Below, in pieces: positions 339 to 49,791 of a stretch of DNA of 64,000 nt (position 1 is its first letter; each line of letters begins with the position of its first letter). The stretch covers positions 8,308,001 to 8,372,000 of the forward strand of contig OZ176050.1 in NCBI GenBank assembly GCA_964247055.1, in the 5' to 3' direction. Origin of the DNA: Paragordius varius (taxonomy: Eukaryota; Animalia; Nematomorpha). A model generated the notes under the pieces. The model had not been told where the DNA came from. It searched no databases and saw only the letters and a list, made by a program, of their open reading frames with translations. A program made the position numbers and the translations under genes.

Positions 339-969
339 ATGGATTCTGTGACCAACCCAATATTTTACTATCCCACTCCAGATAAAATTAAAGAATTATT
401 TGGAAAATTAAATGACAAGGTAAAGTTAAATTAAATTTTCTAGAAACTTGAACTTAAATGGAAAACTCCCGGGCGCATTGATTTAAATGAAAAGCCCGTA
501 GTAAAAAAGCAGCCAAAAAAGCATATCCACCGAAAACCCACAACGGCACATAATTTACAAAAACCTGACTTGTATGATGTAGACATTGATTCAAACAACG
601 AAAAAGATGACCTTAAAAGTTTTAAATTTTGGCTTAAAAGCGAATATTAATATAATAATTATCAACGCAGCCTTTCCACAGAACAATGTAAAGATCGTAA
701 TTTATGGAGGAAACTACTTCGTGGATACAAAACTCCGAATATGGAGTCCTAAAATTATCCATCCATCCATTTATTATTTTTCCTTTATAATTTTTAATTA
801 AATTTAAAAATGCAAATTCAATCCCTCATCCATCTTATAAGTTTTATTTAATTTTATTTTAGCTATTACGTCTTCATCTAAAAAGGACAAGAAATTTTCC
901 CCAACAAACTTTGATTCTGTTTTAAAGGATGTGATAAAACATAAAATATGGGACAAGGAAAAGATATGA
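339..969 (+). CDS. PAGR1: PAXIP1-associated glutamate-rich protein 1 (PA1)-like; exons 339-419, 444-618, 863-969
   Basis: Spliced product has YYPTPDKIKELFGKLNDK|KLELKWKTPGR (cf. invertebrate PA1 W.P.P..I..LYE.L....LEL.W.CPGR) and C-terminal NFDSVLKDVIKHKIWDKE (cf. RLDKVLSDMKRHKKLEEQ). GT-AG introns at 420-443 (24 nt) and 619-862 (244 nt). The start codon is uncertain. Confidence 0.7.
671..770 (+). mobile_element. RTE-type LINE 3'-terminal stub inside PAGR1 intron 2
   Basis: Translates LSTEQCKDRNLWRKLLRGYKTP*, resembling the RTE ORF end (A.DR..WR.L), followed by an (ATCC)n tail. Confidence 0.45.
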
Positions 970-34477: not shown

Positions 34478-37085
34478 TTATAAGATTAAATTCTTCATTG
34501 CAGCTCGCCAAGTGTGGGCATCCAAATCATCTATTATTTTAAAAAAAGATGATTTTATTATAAAAATTTGATAAATTTATAAATCTGTTTTTGAGACTAG
34601 TAATATGACAGTATTAAAACTATAAATTTCACAGTTTTTTAATGAATTAATAAATGAATGATTCAGAATACAATATAAGTAAAATTGTAGTTTCAGTAAT
34701 TAAAAATGTCAAATAAGATATGTATCTATTTTATGTTAGAGTGTCAACTGCTATATATCATTCAAACAAAAAGTTATGTGCTTTTATTAAAGAGTATAAC
34801 TTATGTCTAGTTTAGAGAAGAGTGAGGGAAAAAGCTAGGTTATCTTAATTAAAATTGTCTATATTAATTATAGAAATTGAAATATGCTGCATAATATTTT
34901 TATATGCGATTTCAGACATACACATTCAAAATCAAACAACTCCAAGGCTTTTAGCAACAAAATATTATTTTATAGATAATTAGAAAATCAAAATTTCGAT
35001 AAAAATAAAAGGAAATAGCCGAATTTCAATATATTTGTAAAAAAAATTATCAGACTTTTATACATAGAAAAAAAATTATACTGTCTCACCAAAAAAATTG
35101 TCGATTCAAAATACCAAATAAAAAATTTATAATTATACATATTAGGTTTCTTATAATATGATTCAAACAATCTATATTCATTTTTAAAGATTTTACTTAA
35201 TAATATTTATAGCAAATCATTTTAACTATAATGTATGTTATAATTATTATGATTATGGTCATAGAATTATGCCATATAAACAGGGTCTTACAGATACAAA
35301 TTTAATATACGATTTTATATGGCAATATCTGAAAAAAATAAATATATACATATTTTTGGCTTCCCCTGAATTGGAATCTTTAATTTAAGTCTTTTGAGAT
35401 CCGAACATATCCACACATAAGGACTTTCTGACATTCCATTTGGTTCCTGAAATGATATTGATAAAAAAAAGAATACCAAATCTCGATACGCCTCTTGCGT
35501 TAAGCAATCATCAATGTTAATACATCCCAGGATGCAGCTTGTGGGATAAACGTCAGGAAATTTGATATATTCTACATTTTACGTATTATTATCTTGATAA
35601 TAAAGATAGATATTTATCTACACTAAGTTAAAGGAAAAACTAATTCAGTCATCTATAGGGTGCTTTATGTTTTATTTTTCATATATGTTTTGGTATTGAT
35701 TATGTTAGATTTTACCAGGAAAAAGGTATGAATTGATTAATGAATTACCGTTTGAATTTGTCTGATAAATTTGTTCCAGTGATTTGACTTCATTGGGATC
35801 TATTGGTTTTCCTGTTGAAGCAATCCATAAGCGACCTCGATGTGCCGTAGGCCATGACCTTCCTTCTTCTCTAAAATGTTATTAACAATATATGTATTAA
35901 TGACAGAAAAATATTTAGCATTACTTCTTTTTGTAAAAAATGGCTTTTTTGTTATTCTATTATGTAATACTGTTTAGACCCACAAATGAGTAGTGTTTTA
36001 GTTTTGTCTACAAATGACGTATTAAAACGCAAAAAAGCTATCTATATTTGAAAAAAACTTTTAGATTTAACCTGATTTTTCATATAAAAGAGTGTATATT
36101 TTGTATATTTATTATATGGCCATCATAATTGATGACATTTCTGATTTTACAAACAAAATTCTTTGTGTTGCCGTGTTTCTCACAAAAGAAGTTTGACCAT
36201 TTTATTATTAATAATATTTTTACGTAACTAACAATAAGGAAATAGAAACCATACAAAACTTTAGCATTATCATATGGTTAAACAATTAGTGAACTAGCTA
36301 TTATTTTAAAAATTAAACATAAATTGTGAAATTAAAAAAATGATGTTCACACAGATATAAACCAAAATAATGTTAAGATATTAAGAACATATCATAATTG
36401 AAAATTAAAAGAACGTTTGTTATCATTCAATTAATTTGATGGAAACACTGTTTTTCAGTTAATAAATTTTAGAAATCCCATTATTTTATTTATCTAAAAA
36501 ATTTAACCCACTAGACAATCGAAATAAAAATTAATAAACTTTTTAATGCCATATATCAGGAGTGAGGCGTAAGGTTGGTGCATACTGAGACATTTTCTTT
36601 GATCAAAAGCAGCATTGAAATCATCATCCTGAATTCTTCTGATTTTTGGCGATTCCAAGGATATTTTAGGGGATAATTTTGTAGTATTTGTCTCAATAAA
36701 CTAATTAAAAAATATTAATATATTATAAAATTATAAATTTTGGAATATGCTTTAACTAACTTTCTAACTTCAAAATGGGATTTTAAAAAATTGAAGAGTC
36801 ACGAGGCAAATTCAATGATTTTAATAAAATTACAAATAATAAAGATGTCGTAAATGATTCCATTTACAATTCAAACTCACCCTTAAACAATTCAAATTCC
36901 CCCTAAAAATAAATTATGTGTTTTCGGGATAATCTATATTCATCATTAATAAGAAATATATTTTTATGTCATAGTTTATTATTTTTTCAGTATTATATTA
37001 ATTTTAAAGTAATTTCATTTTTTTAAATATATTAATAAAGGTAATTTTTCACATAATTTATTTTAGGATAAATTTGAATTGTTAA

Positions 37086-37173
<88 letters not shown>

Positions 37174-39051
37174 ACCCTTTTTGACACTTATGATCGAAAA
37201 ATGAATGCGCGAAAAAAAACACCAGAAATGCTTTTTGATAAGAGAAGCCGAATAAAGAGTTGTATAATAGAGATACATTAAAAATGTCAAAAGGGTATTT
37301 TGTAAAGATGAAGCGTAAAATTAAGATGCAAGAGTGAACTTGAGTATATGGTATAAGTGAATAAATTTAAAATTATTAGCATTTACAATTCAAATTCACC
37401 CTTAAACAATTCAAATTCACCCTAAAAATAAATTGTGTTAACGCTAATATAACTCATTATTATGAAATATTATCTTTATAGCTTATTTTATTGTTTGTAT
37501 TATTTATATATTTTAAAAAATATAAAAATAAGCTAATATTTAATTTTAAAAAATACGTAATCTATTTTAGAGTGAATTTGTTGTTCGAGGGTGAATTTGA
37601 ACTGTAAATAGTATATATAACACAATTGGTTGTTAATAAAATATCAAAGTTCACAAATATTTTTTGGACAACATTTATAAAAACAAATTTATATTATAAT
37701 TTATACAATTATATGTTATAGAAAATATTTAAGATAATTTACAAAATTAAATTATAATTAAATTTTTTAATAAATTGACTAAAATATTTTAAAAATAAAA
37801 TTAAAAGCCCTAAAAATATGCCATAAAGGCCAATTATTTAATTAGTTTAGCATTGCAAATTATATGAGGTTAAAGAAGTTGAAAATTATATTATATGAAA
37901 AAAGGGATATAGTTTTAAAATAATAGAAATAAAACTAAACCAAAAACAATATGTTTTATTGTCTAATTACAAAAAAATATTTTATATTTTTATTGAATTG
38001 ATCAATATATTAATGGGTTCAAAATACATAACGAGCATATGATTAATAAACTTTAGGCTAAATTATTCATAATAAAAATTAATAATATCAAATTATATAT
38101 TAAACTTTTGGCATAGGATAGTTATTTATAATATTGTGGTCTATCATCTCCGAGTTTGCTTCAGGCACCGTATTTTCAACTAAATCTTTCTTTTTTTGTT
38201 TGGAAATTTCGTTAACAAAATTATTATCTGGAACCGTTTCGGAGATAGATCTTAAAAAACAAAATTTAAAACACATATGCCTAATAATTGTTCCATCGTA
38301 CCTTAAACATATCATAATTTTATAATTTGGCATAAAAACTTAAAAAAATAAATATAAAAATTTTTACATTAAAAATGTATTTAAGATGTGAAAATTATGG
38401 ATAAAACAGCTTGTAAGCCTGAGAACCATTATTGTATAATAAACTGTACAAAATTTAAAATTTATAGTACTTTAAGAATAATATCTTACTTACAAATTTT
38501 TAAAATTTATGGATATTTCTTTGGCCTTGCCAAAACGTGAACCATGTTTTTGATCATAATTTTTTGCTTCCATTTCTTGCATGGTAGCCCTTTCTATGGG
38601 ATTAAGCCAATGTGCATTTTCGGAACTAAAGTAATCAGACTGATCATCAATGACAACAGTTCGTTTAGCACTGATATAAAAAAATTAAAATACGTAGTTT
38701 TATCATAATTTAACAGTCGTTTTTTGTTTGCAATCGCTTGCCCCTCATCGCTCATCAGCTTTATTAACAATTTATCGCTGGCTTTGGATGCGCGATTCAA
38801 TATTTCTTGTTCTTCATTCGTACAAACATAATAATTATATAAAGTGTATACTAAATTTCCGCAAAAAAAACATGGACCAGAACCCTCTTGAGCACAGATA
38901 ATACGCCCACACTTTAAGCAATTGTTGATTAACTTATGTTTGTAAGCCTGACACTCGCATTCATGTCTTCCAGGTAATAAAAAATATTTATCCTTTTGAA
39001 CATCTATAATTTTTCTCACCATGTGAAAAAAAGATCTTACGATTTTGACAT
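34478..39051 (-). CDS. TRIP4: Activating signal cointegrator 1 (ASC-1): zf-C2HC5 plus ASCH domain; about 10 exons, 5' start tentative
   Basis: LPGRHECECQAYKHKLINNCLKCGRIICAQEGSGPCFFCGNLV, KRTVVIDDQSDYF, RRIQD, CLSMHQPYASLLIYGIK|EEGRSWPTAHRGRLWIAST, FPDVYPTSCILGCI, KIPIQGKPKI|YDLDAHTWRAAMKNL*. Introns 38693-38671 (23 nt), 38493-38251, 38105-36701, 36539-35871, 35748-35572, 35476-35447 (30 nt), 35349-34531; odd 24-nt insert at 38851-38828; tentative first intron 39040-39015. Confidence 0.9.
36862..37609. mobile_element. MITE with ~45-bp TIRs (37381-37609) plus a second left arm at 36862, in a TRIP4 intron
   Basis: atttacaattcaaa(c/t)tcacccttaaacaattcaaattc occurs directly at 36862 and 37381, and inverted at ~37565-37609. 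Confidence 0.65.
37088..37170. repeat. (AT)n microsatellite, ~83 bp
   Basis: Pure AT dinucleotide run; shorter runs also near 2833, 22568, 24586, 55529 and 61235. Confidence 0.98.
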
Positions 39052-45010: not shown

Positions 45011-45717
45011 GTGAAAAATGCGCTTTAAATATTACAAAAATAATTTAATTTGTCCGCTATTAGCCAAAATCAGAAAATCGTATTTTTATTGTGCACTAGG
45101 TCGAATATTAAATACAATTCAGTTAAACGCTTCAACAAAATTTTATATATTAATATTTATTTTAAAGGCAATTTTAAACGAAAAATACTAATTAAGATTC
45201 TGAATTTCAGTGTTGACAGAATAATAATGATAAAAGAAAAAAAACCGTACTTTGGTTTCGAATTCCAATCAAAAACTTTGCGCTTATGCGGTAAAAATTT
45301 TAACTTAATTAACTATCATAGATAATAGTTTACCAAATATTTCGCGTTATGATTTTTTATATTTAATATATTGCGCTAAAACCGTAAATTTTAAGAAACG
45401 TTCAAAAGACATATAATTTCCAAAGAAAAGTTAAAGCTATTTCTCTATTTTAAATGTTTTAGAGATATTTATACTTCCCATTTTGCCCAATGTTAAAATA
45501 AATAATCTTTTATTAACTATTTAGGCTATAGTCTAAATTTATGTTAAATAGGAAACTAATAATATATAATTGATTCATTTTTTTGTATATAACACTTGTT
45601 TTTAGTTCATGATTGAGTAAAACAACAATCAATATTTAACTTTTTTACACGAAATGTTTATTAATAAATAATTGATAATGTGCTATATCATTGATTGAGT
45701 GATTAGTGTGGTTGTAC

Positions 45718-48220
45718 ATGGCTTTAGACACGTCAACGGCCCGGTTATCTCGCATAGAAAAATATGTTTCATCGCTCTGGGCCGAAGGAAATGCCAAATT
45801 TCCTGATATCAAAGTTAAGGTTGGTGATAATACGTTTCCAGCTCATAGAATAATACTCATATGTCACAGGTAAAAAATGTTCTATACATATTTACAGGCA
45901 AATATGAAAATATTCTTGGTTTTTTTTCATAATCTTAACTTAAAAAATAATACTAAAATTTTTTTATCTAAACATATTTAATTTATATTAGTGACTATTT
46001 TTGTGACAAAATCCTGAACGAGCCATCCATTACAGAAATAACGATCCCATCCGAATTTAACATAACAGCTGATGCATTTAAAAGTACCTTGGAATTCATG
46101 TACAAATCGGAGCTGAATTTAACTCCACAAAATTTAGATGCACTGATGAATGTTTCGAAAAAATTAGGGATGTTTCACATTACTAGATTGTGTGAAACAT
46201 TAGCGGTTCCACCTCCAGAAAAACCAGCTGAGAAGGTTTTAACTCCTAAAGATCAGCCTGGTATTTTTTATAAATAGCTATGTTTTTAACGAAAACCATT
46301 TTAATAGTTAAAACTCTGCAATACAGCTTATTTTATTAAAACGTTACTTAATATAAGCTTAAATGTCGTTAATGTCCAGATAACGCATTTACTGTTATTT
46401 CATTTTGTATTATTATAATGTAACATGCAAAAAATGTGGCTATTAAAAAGGTAATAATCGAAGTGGATATTCATACATTACCAATTATTTTAAGGTTATA
46501 ACAACGTTGTAAAATTGAAATAGTTTTTTATAAAAATGGCTATATATAAGAATAGGAAAACCTAAATTAATTTTGTATAAGATAATAAATTTAAAAAATT
46601 ATAAAAATATCAAAGATAAACAAAGTAATAAGATTATTATTCAACAATTTAAGTTAAAAATTAAATTTTCTTGTAAAAAAATGCTTGTTTATAACAAATA
46701 TTTATCATTCAATGCTCTAAGTTTGAAAAAAAATTGTTCATTTACTTTTACTAAATAATTAGATATTAAAATGCAACAAGTGCCTTGGGGAGATATTTAC
46801 AGTGCAAGCGATATGAATTGGCAACCGACTATGAGAACATCTGCCGTGGGTCATTACATGAAATATTTGTGGTATAAACGGTTAGATGATACAGCAGATT
46901 TTGTATTAACTATGGGACCATATAATTACAAAGTCCATAAATTCGTACTTAGTTGTCACAGTTCGTATTATGCCGACCTGTTTCGGAAACAACCCTTCTT
47001 AAATGCCTCAAGTTTACCCAATTTTTTGGTCACGGATGACAGCACTTTCCAGGAGTTTCTTAAAATTTTGTATACTCAAGACATTCCTACTACGATTGAT
47101 GGGCGAACGTTTAATACGATCCGTAATTTGGCACAAGCTTTACAAATGTCACACATTGCAAACGCCTTAAATCAAAAATATGGCGGTGAGATGCTTAACA
47201 CACAATGTATGATGGGAACGGGTGGAATAAACGCTGCACAACAAAATGCAGTACCATTTCAGCAATCAAATATGTTTCCTCTCATAAACAATAATAACAA
47301 TGTACCAAATTATAACATAATTGGCAATAATAACGCCGCCGGTGCCGCCCCATTTTCCCAACCTACCATGAATATGATAAGCCCAGGAGGTTTTAAAACA
47401 TATAACGGTGGACAACAAAATATGGCATACCAACAGCCAACCAACGCAATGAACGGAGATGAAAATGCATTTCTTCAACTGTTATCGTCAGACACGGTCC
47501 CGTACGCCAGTGAATGGGAGTTGGCCCAAAGCGCCATATCTTGGCTAAGGAACCAACAGAACCCCGAAACGTTAGTCTGGAAAGTTCTCTCGTGTATCCG
47601 TTATAATTTGCTTACAAAAGGCGAAATACAAAATCTTGTGAGGATAACTAAAGATTGGTTTACCAAAATAGCAGAATATAGGGATCTAATCTACACCGCT
47701 GATTGGTAATATTAACATATACACAATTTAGCTTTGTGTCAAAATACATACGATCCCTATCTTAATAAATTTGATACAATACTTATATTGTATATTTCTA
47801 CTTTTATACAAATAAAGTGTTAAAGTCATATCACAAACTATATAAGTAACGAATTTTTTAATTATGATTAGATAAAATTTTAATTTACTCTGTATAAGAT
47901 TCAATGAATATACTATATAACGATTTCAGATTGTTAGATAAAACTATTTATAAAAACCATTGGATATTTTACATTATGGATATTCACTATACCTTTTTAT
48001 TCTCTACTAAGTATTAAATTTGACTGAATTAAAATAAAAAATCGTAAAACAATTTATTTGTAAATTCATGATAAATTATATTTGAATATAATGATAAATG
48101 GTATATTATTTTGTTTATAGGTTGTTATCCTGTCAAAGATTTAACCTTGAACCATTGTTTGTAGGGAATCCAAGATCGCGATTTTATTCAAAACAAGCGC
48201 AACCATATATAGCATATTAA
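45718..48220 (+). CDS. Protein with two tandem BTB/POZ domains, a Q/N/G-rich linker and a partial BACK domain; exons 45718-45869, 45992-46260, 46763-47705, 48121-48220
   Basis: BTB1: DIKVKVGDNTFPAHRIILICHS|DYF...LEFMY. BTB2: DFVLTMGPYNYKVHKFVLSCHSSYY...LKILY. BACK-like: FLQLLSSD...SEWELAQSAISWL...VLSCIRY, ending ...GNPRSR. Three GT-AG phase-compatible introns (122, 502, 415 nt). Confidence 0.85.
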
Positions 48221-48244
48221 ATATTGTATTAAAATGATTTAGTA

Positions 48245-48689
48245 TTATGATTTTATATTACCATGCATTCGATTAAAGCTTAGTTTATATAATAAATATA
48301 CTGATAAATCCTGTATAATTGATATATACCGGTTGCACCGACAAATAAATTAACGCTCATGAGATAATAATTTTTCGGTATAATTACAACTGAATATCTC
48401 GCCCAAATTAAACCTATATCAGAAAAAAATATTACCTGTAGCTGCGAGAGCACCGGATTGAAAAAGACTCAATTTCTCTGCAGGTCTGGTTATATCACCG
48501 ATTCCTGCTATAACAAGCGCCTAAAATATATGAATTCAAAACCCATTTAAAGGTGGGTGCCCAAAAGAAAATTGTTTTCGGGCCTAAATATATAAGATTA
48601 TAACAACCTGCTGGATGATCCCATGTCGTTTTAAATGTATTTACAATCGGATCAACACTTTTGACTAAAAAACGATACAGGCCAGTCAT
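48245..48689 (-). CDS. MPC2: Mitochondrial pyruvate carrier 2; exons 48689-48608, 48583-48543, 48520-48436, 48413-48302, 48278-48245
   Basis: After removing four GT-AG introns (24, 22, 22, 23 nt): MTGLYRF...WDHPAGPKTIFFWAPTFKWALVIAGIGDITRPAEKLSLFQSGALAATGLIWARYSVVIIPKNYYLMSVNLFVGATGIYQLYRIYHFNRMHGNIKS*, colinear with recalled MPC2. Confidence 0.96.
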
Positions 48690-49379
48690 ACGAATTGCAT
48701 CTGCCGCATGAAATATGTGCCAAAACAGATTTCGCAAAAAAAATATAAATCAATTTTTGGGTATAAATTCAGTAATATTATATAAAATATATTATATATA
48801 AATAATATCGAATTTGATTTTTTATCCTAATGCCTTGTAAATGGTAAATTATTTATATAACAAACTAATAAAAAATAAATAGCCTTTGCATTTCATTTTT
48901 AAATATTTAACTTGATATAATATATGTGAAAGTAAATACATGGCTATTTAATAGAATTTTTAATTAATGTCTGCAAAAACATAGAGTAAAAGAAAAAAGT
49001 GGATTTTCGAATTGATTCACAGCTAAGAAGTGTACTCAGTTATCAACCCTCGGTGACCTTTTCACTCGAAAAAAAATCAACATCTGGTAACAGAAAAGTA
49101 CTTATTGGCTTTCAAAACACCCCCGGGCGCGCAGGTAGAAATTATTTTATATATTACAATATCAATTTTTAATAGGCTATATCTTGCATTCTGAATGCAT
49201 TTCAATAAATAGCATCTATTCAATCTTGCGATTATGTATTATTTTATGGAATATTATCCACATTATTTGAAAATAACCTCGTATTAGAATGCCAAGCTAA
49301 ATTGGAATCGGAACCCGAACTATTTTGTCCGCGTTTTTAATGAATAAGTAATACATATCGAGAGTCAAATATACCTTAA

Positions 49380-49791
49380 CAGTCCATCACCTTTTGCGGT
49401 AATTTTATACGGTTTAAATTCAAATATCTTAAAAGTATTTAGGCTAGTAAGTCAATTTTAAAACGCATTATGCAAAAATATTTTTAAAAATATAAAATTG
49501 TAAAAAAACCCTCATATTAAACATGCCATTTTGTTTTATAAATTCTTTAAATCGCTAATCCAACAGCAAAAAAAATTATATTATAGTTATTATAAATTAT
49601 TGATTTAAAAAGCTTCAGTGACATTTTAAGACTAAACTTTATATATTTTGATATCAGGTGTTTCAATCGTGTTTTGAAGCTGTCCCAATTTTACTCTAGA
49701 AGTCGCACGAAAAAATATGAGCCTTTTTATCTAAACATGAGAACAATATTTGTTGGATAAATTAAATTTTAACCGAAAAGGTCATGAAGTG
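49380..49791. mobile_element. 412-bp piggyBac-like MITE, family A
   Basis: TTAA at 49376-49379 and 49792-49795; TIR CAGTCCATCACCTTTT vs CACTTCATGACCTTTT (13/16 identical). Confidence 0.75.

Follow-up and report, generated by a model that had tools for sequence, protein, structure and literature searches.

The MPC2 gene of the hairworm Paragordius varius is interrupted by four segments of only 22–24 nt that are, very probably, genuine U2-type GT-AG introns, shrunk to this size at ancestral MPC2 positions and spliced out so as to leave the message for a 117-residue carrier that is colinear with the MPC2 of other animals. The gene lies on the minus strand (48689-48245) of the 64,000-nt stretch of DNA analysed here, which we call the window, and the four GT-AG segments that interrupt its exons measure 24, 22, 22 and 23 nt. 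An earlier note, made from the letters of this DNA alone, had listed their coordinates and lengths, which match the sequence exactly. It described the segments as almost pure A/T; their G+C content is 13–18% compared with 24–47% for the exons, the window as a whole standing at ~27–28% (27.8% computed). A broader reading is that a lineage outside Myxozoa and Dicyemida has acquired, by shrinkage, a discrete class of 21–30-nt introns that stand beside introns of 0.1–1.4 kb in the same genes and are served by a complete canonical spliceosome; we give this about even chances of being right.

The MPC2 gene and its intron positions

All features of the gene model are on the minus strand. The coding part of exon 1 (48608..48689) runs from the ATG at 48689 to HPA and the G of a split codon. 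Intron 1 (48584..48607; 24 nt, GTTG...TTAG, GT-AG, phase 1) would, if kept, leave the frame open and without a stop, adding eight residues within the conserved HPAGP motif. Exon 2 (48543..48583; 41 nt, GPKTIFFWAPTFKW) corresponds to residues 37–50 of human MPC2, and exon 3 (48436..48520; 85 nt) to residues 51–78 and to positions 25–52 of the Pfam MPC profile. Intron 2 (48521..48542; 22 nt, GT-AG, phase 0) lies between these two exons and intron 3 (48414..48435; 22 nt, GT-AG, phase 1) follows exon 3; either would shift the frame if kept. Exon 4 (48302..48413; 112 nt) covers human residues 80–115 and Pfam MPC positions 54–88 (E 8e-12). Beyond it, a probable intron 4 (48279..48301; 23 nt, GT-AG, phase 2), at a conserved position and in a conserved phase, leads into exon 5 (48245..48278), which is drawn from the reading frame, requires splicing of intron 4, and would supply the last 11 codons and the stop. 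Without that splicing the protein would end merely six codons further on, and the C-terminal tail is not conserved in either reading, spliced or retained. At the other end of the gene, an upstream open reading frame of seven codons (48687-48709, minus strand) begins with the ATG at 48709 and contains a second in-frame ATG at 48700; its TGA overlaps the MPC2 start codon (ATGA).

We searched the exons one by one against Pfam profiles and against the sequences of solved structures (PDB), among which the best match was human MPC2. At the intron 1 junction HPAG/P joins exactly as human H33-P37, the exon 1 Gly codon preceding P37; at intron 2 human residue 50 is followed by residue 51 with zero gap; and at intron 3 the split codon corresponds to G79, so that human T78-G79-80 is matched without a gap. 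Removal of introns 1–3 therefore aligns the exons with human MPC2 across three junctions without a single gap. The earlier note had claimed colinearity with the family after removal of all four segments; for the first three this stands in full, and the fourth is probable from the position and phase of its counterpart on another contig, L035.

L035 came from a word search with the MPC2 read-through open reading frame, which returned two mis-called proteins, P0001 (L034) and P0002 (L035). Both are public protein records that represent other organisms' MPC2 genes translated through their introns; the matches otherwise consisted of some chytrid fungi, with no hairworm-type relative among them. L035 itself is a scaffold in a public metagenome assembly, an unrelated animal contig with an MPC2 gene. 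Exons 2–4 of that gene measure 41, 85 and 112 nt, exactly as in the window, and its introns, of 74, 50, 448 and 509 nt, match window introns 1–4 respectively in both position and phase. The fourth intron falls, in L035 and window alike, after R-I-Y and two bases of the following codon, and L034 carries a 45-nt intron at the position and phase of intron 1. Each of the four MPC2 introns thus shares its position and phase, as a U2-type intron should, with an intron of L035, and intron 1 with one of L034 as well. We regard these conserved positions as the strongest evidence for the predicted micro-introns of MPC2. Since all four sit at positions used in L035, the positions are older than the lineage, and this makes shrinkage of ordinary introns the simplest history. 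P0001 and P0002 also provide, as read-throughs in other organisms, a concrete case of what the earlier note had anticipated, namely that gene callers with a minimum intron length mis-call such genes. Both records illustrate how intron-blind gene calling yields chimeric 'proteins'.

Independent contigs covering MPC2

We compared positions 45500-49500 with contigs of run X3, from a separate study, and with contigs of three runs, X9-X11, that are guessed to be RNA. X3 coverage extended over 24 of the 30 bins of this interval at low depth and included intergenic DNA, so X3 appears to behave as genomic DNA. One X3 contig spans 48173-48620 with no gaps and a single mismatch over 448 nt, from which it follows that all four MPC2 segments exist in independent DNA. 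DNA contigs from two studies contain the segments. The sole mismatch, at 48432, is position +4 of intron 3 and leaves the length of that intron the same.

The X9-X11 contigs gave a different pattern, with coverage of the MPC2 exons only and at high depth, their RNA nature being a guess. They align with exon 4 (48308-48410, ~83% identity) and with the end of exon 1 (48607-48626), and between the aligned points they have 128 letters, compared with 196 in the genome. The shortfall of 68 letters is the sum 24+22+22. Next to 48410, 30 letters read QSSALAATG-I-IW where the spliced window reads QSGALAATG-L-IW, and are therefore the end of exon 3 and not intron. Introns 1 and 2 are accounted for in these contigs by length alone, and intron 3 by its exon 3–exon 4 junction; intron 4 lies outside the alignment because the tails diverge. 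At ~83% identity in exon 4, the contigs are those of a diverged relative that bears the same species label, under which more than one species is probably gathered. The N- and C-terminal coding parts of MPC2 in X9-X11 differ strongly from those of the window. Read in this way, the relative's mRNA would have the predicted MPC2 structure for introns 1–3, and we infer that the species itself splices likewise. The earlier note had named pseudogenes and assembly errors as the readings that would undo its own. On this point the segments are present in X3 DNA with no gaps, and the transcript-like contigs without introns 1–3 are those of a relative.

Short and long introns in other genes

The earlier note also described TRIP4 as a gene that mixes both intron classes, and so it does: an intron of 23 nt stands beside introns of 177–1405 nt, the figure of 1405 nt being right. 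The 23-nt intron (38671..38693, minus strand; GT-AG, phase 2, with a split codon) connects the zf-C2HC5 exon, whose match to human stops at residue 279, with the TRIP4_3rd exon, which starts from residue 281/282, matches its Pfam profile at E 2e-11, and is in a different frame. Just 5' of the acceptor a stop closes the downstream frame, which fixes the 3' site, and from its sequence context this intron is well supported. A second proposed micro-intron of the gene, 35447..35476 (minus strand; 30 nt, GT-AG), is a plausible candidate. A PDB sequence search places it within the ASCH domain, flanked by human residues 529 and ~533–536; the Pfam ASCH profile had given no match to the short TRIP4 exons here. 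Against the human ASCH-domain and full-length chains, the loop would be 2–3 residues shorter if the segment is spliced and 7–8 residues longer if it is retained, and as the segment is in frame without a stop, homology alone gives no decision. Of the two micro-introns the earlier note had assigned to TRIP4, then, the 23-nt one stands on its split codon and change of frame, and the in-frame, stop-free 30-nt one is a candidate.

The long introns of TRIP4, all GT-AG and on the minus strand, were placed from splice sites and frames in the sequence: 38251-38493 (243 nt), 36701..38105 (1405 nt), 35871-36539 (669 nt) and 35572-35748 (177 nt). Read in order from the zinc-finger exon, the introns are thus 23, 243, 1405, 669, 177 and (candidate) 30 nt, with ~2.9 kb of DNA between the exons that match human residues 332 and 499. 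Two further features of this gene may be mentioned. Within the zinc finger, at 38828-38851 (minus strand), there is an AT-rich in-frame insertion of 24 nt relative to human ASC-1, VYTLYNYY, which has no GT-AG ends; it could be a true insertion in the coding sequence or a non-canonical feature of some kind. At the gene's 3' end, just ahead of the stop codon, there is a possible GT-AG segment of 21 nt (35329-35349, minus strand), in frame and without a stop.

A 24-nt intron in a PAGR1 gene had been claimed as well. The segment itself is there (420..443, plus strand), with GT-AG ends and a stop inside, joining open frames of 27 and 68 codons; the identity of the gene as PAGR1 found no backing: no Pfam match appeared at E<=1, Atlas scores stayed below 0.8 and the word search gave nothing.

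Outside the window, the MPC1 paralog (L002; G000:C5) has introns of 23, 24, 26 and 121 nt. Its region L002:1213-1305 consists of the 23-nt intron, a 4-nt exon, CACG (1236-1239), the 24-nt intron, a 16-nt exon (HFWGP) and the 26-nt intron, so micro-introns even flank exons as small as 4 and 16 nt; a single canonical intron could not connect HFWGP in frame with the conserved ...KDFRQYLMS block. A 3' splice site and the next 5' splice site only 4 nt apart could hardly be recognised simultaneously, which points to ordered removal. In the 200 kb on the downstream side of the window, PSMD4/Rpn10 contains a 22-nt intron (L028:5230-5251, minus strand) whose flanks match human residues 10–55 and from ~57–58 on, with 39 of 46 residues identical to human. 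A 23-nt candidate is found over the same distance in a gene that we take to be GHITM-like (L021:3646-3668, plus strand). These last two came out of a homology-free scan of 264 kb (the window and 200 kb more), in which we counted GT..AG segments joining two open coding-like frames and compared them with five decoy end pairs. The scan itself gave no clear excess with loose filters, and 4–5 with strict ones versus 0–5 for the decoys, the 264 kb having too little power.

Lengths below 30 nt were hence found in several metazoan protein-coding genes: MPC2 (22–24 nt), TRIP4 (23 nt), MPC1 (23–26 nt) and PSMD4 (22 nt). The gene content of the window is that of an animal, with a class C GPCR, TRIP4 and BTB-BACK recognised by Pfam. 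Altogether the genes examined contain 12–13 introns of 21–30 nt and five defined introns of 121–1405 nt, to which the class C GPCR gene adds two introns of ~250 and ~650 nt estimated by eye. None of the ~17 defined and two estimated introns, a small sample, is of 31–120 nt, which is a weak test of the strongly bimodal lengths that the earlier note had proposed. Because TRIP4 and MPC1 also carry introns of 0.1–1.4 kb, the short ones would be a size class within a normal repertoire and not a mark of overall genome compaction.

Splicing machinery and comparison with other systems

All 12 micro-introns examined for splice signals (the four of MPC2 and eight others) begin with GT and finish with AG. 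Position +3 is A in eight and T in four, position -3 is T in eight, C in two and A in two, and the pyrimidine tracts are very short. Each has several inner A residues, and no evident branch-point consensus, in keeping with what had been reported from the first look at the sequence: no k-mer survived correction for multiple testing as a branch-site motif in the 12. ATAT occurs in 11 of them versus 42% of background segments, a nominal p of 5e-4 that is lost after correction for ~1300 k-mers, and TAAT, read by eye, in five. U12-type motifs (5' ATATCC/GTATCC, TCCTTAAC branch site) were seen in none of the 12.

We also took an inventory of the spliceosome. Full-length snRNAs were found for U1 (124 bits; 5' end ACUUACCUG, DNA ACTTACCTG), U2 (178 bits, with GUAGUA, DNA GTAGTA, intact), U4 (107 bits), U5 (91 bits) and U6 (114 bits). 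Of the protein factors, SF1 and SF3B1 are present, as is a gene that aligns colinearly to the profile of the U2AF large subunit. The major spliceosome is thus encoded, and the 'reduced spliceosome' suggested by the earlier note is not supported by this inventory. U6atac was found too, likewise full length (66 bits, G000:C2:4857045-4857187), and the genome search gave no match to U12, an absence that is not conclusive; some component of the minor spliceosome is apparently kept.

From this we picture the following course of events. The 22–24-nt introns would be removed from the MPC2 pre-mRNA to give the 117-residue carrier. Most likely, the ordinary major spliceosome would pair the splice sites across each micro-intron (intron definition), using a branch adenosine that would lie within the ~18 A/T-rich inner bases, and the micro-introns would derive from ordinary introns by shrinkage. 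In this picture we infer that the species itself splices, where the branch site lies, that splice sites pair by intron definition and that shrinkage was the origin.

Could the segments be something else? If MPC2 were a decayed pseudogene, or the segments errors of assembly or polishing, there would be no splicing, and two of the MPC2 segments would indeed shift the frame if kept. Yet independent X3 DNA is identical in length, with no gap over 448 nt; all MPC2 exons are open and exons 2–4 match the L035 lengths; the GT-AG ends are placed exactly at conserved intron positions; and the same class recurs in TRIP4, MPC1 and PSMD4. On the X3 DNA, the open exons and the conserved positions we rejected both pseudogene and assembly error, and we hold either to be extremely unlikely. 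The small size and A/T richness of the segments also recall the eliminated sequences of Paramecium, which are similarly small and A/T-rich, and the segments might then be cut out of DNA, in the manner of ciliate short internal eliminated sequences, and not out of RNA. This we likewise rejected, as having practically no chance of being right: the ends are GT...AG and not TA...TA, the segments coincide in position and phase with spliceosomal introns of other animals, and DNA contigs from two studies contain them.

Even with genuine U2-type introns, which we prefer, splicing might be constitutive for the frame-shifting segments only, the MPC2 24-nt segment, the TRIP4 30-nt and possible 21-nt segments and the 23-nt segment in the MPC2 tail being partly or fully retained, where they would act as coding insertions or alternative ends. 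The MPC2 24-nt and TRIP4 30-nt segments are open and have no stop, the MPC2 tail is unconserved in both readings, and TRIP4 has its AT-rich 24-nt in-frame insertion lacking GT-AG ends. If retained, however, the MPC2 24-nt segment would split the HPAGP motif; it sits at a conserved intron position and is counted among the 68 letters absent in the relative's transcript-like contigs, and MPC2 intron 4 is conserved in position and phase. We therefore think such retention unlikely as a general account, and intron 1 and the TRIP4 30-nt segment could be retained in some transcripts. The remaining question is whether introns this small require a specialised or reduced spliceosome, in which U2AF, SF1 or U1 function has been lost, or a second machine. 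A length of 22–24 nt is less than the spacing usually deemed necessary from 5' splice site to branch point, the pyrimidine tracts are very short, and U12 is unmatched, inconclusive as that is. But U1, U2, U4, U5 and U6 are full length with the U1 5' end and U2 GUAGUA canonical, U6atac, SF1, SF3B1 and a U2AF-large-like gene are found, and long and short introns of the same genes are alike in their GT-AG ends; a special machine was also argued against for myxozoans and Stentor (PMC13644364). We consider it very unlikely here.

The system thus pictured, of genuine U2-type micro-introns removed by the major spliceosome, has partial parallels elsewhere. A survey of 51 animal genomes (PMC13644364; Mol Biol Evol, September 2026) found introns shorter than 30 bp only in myxobolid Myxozoa, with medians of 27 bp in Henneguya salminicola and 22 bp in Thelohanellus kitauei and Myxobolus rasmusseni, and in Dicyema japonicum, and concluded that the spliceosome is conventional in myxozoans and in Stentor; hairworms are not mentioned in it. 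Our search of the literature for hairworm or Nematomorpha introns found nothing relevant, and the two hairworm genome preprints consulted do not contain the word 'intron'. One of them gives 26.9% G+C, 64% repeats and 71.6% BUSCO completeness for a hairworm genome, a G+C content close to the 27.8% here and near the 29% of Henneguya. The myxobolid introns resemble those described here in being GT-AG introns of ~22–27 nt at conserved positions between conserved exons, with weak splice-site motifs and canonical U2 and U2AF kept, in an A/T-rich genome (29% G+C there, ~28% here; PMC13644364). They differ in that the short class makes up the bulk of the introns and sets the median, and in that their bearers are reduced cnidarian parasites, whereas here it shares genes with introns of 121–1405 nt. 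The proteins here are also far nearer to human than the myxobolid ones, as the PSMD4 comparison exemplifies.

In Dicyema japonicum, too, introns below 30 nt occupy conserved positions, and about GTA is all that is left of the 5' signal (summarised in PMC13644364 and PMC2222250). Dicyemid genomes are small and compact and short introns are the rule in them, whereas in the present genome the short class occurs beside kb-size introns and many repeats. Among ciliates, Paramecium (~25 nt) and Stentor (15–16 nt) have introns like these in size, A/T richness, GT-AG ends and a conventional spliceosome (PMC5014332, PMC13644364). They are protists with variant codes in which essentially all introns are tiny, in contrast to the standard code and animal gene set here. 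The 'ultra-short' human introns of 43–65 nt share the truncated pyrimidine tracts and the setting in a genome of long introns, but are about twice as long and rare, and some of them rely on SPF45 in place of U2AF (PMC4463651, PMC8363638). Introns of 22–24 nt are not accepted in human.

Before 2026, introns of less than ~30 nt were thought to be absent in animals, and the published animal lineages that have them, myxobolid Myxozoa and Dicyema japonicum, both have compact genomes (PMC13644364). Judged from sequence, the MPC2 case speaks for one more animal lineage in which introns shorter than 30 nt are removed, apparently with a normal spliceosome. Gene predictors and read mappers that impose a minimum intron length would break or drop such genes, and if the finding is true, low completeness scores and 'gene loss' in genomes of this kind could in part be artefacts of annotation. 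It would also offer a natural system in which to ask how a 5' splice site, a branch point and a 3' splice site fit into ~22 nt. Finally, the major spliceosome of an animal would cope with both size extremes within one transcript, and intron shrinkage would be separable from the reduction or compaction of the genome.
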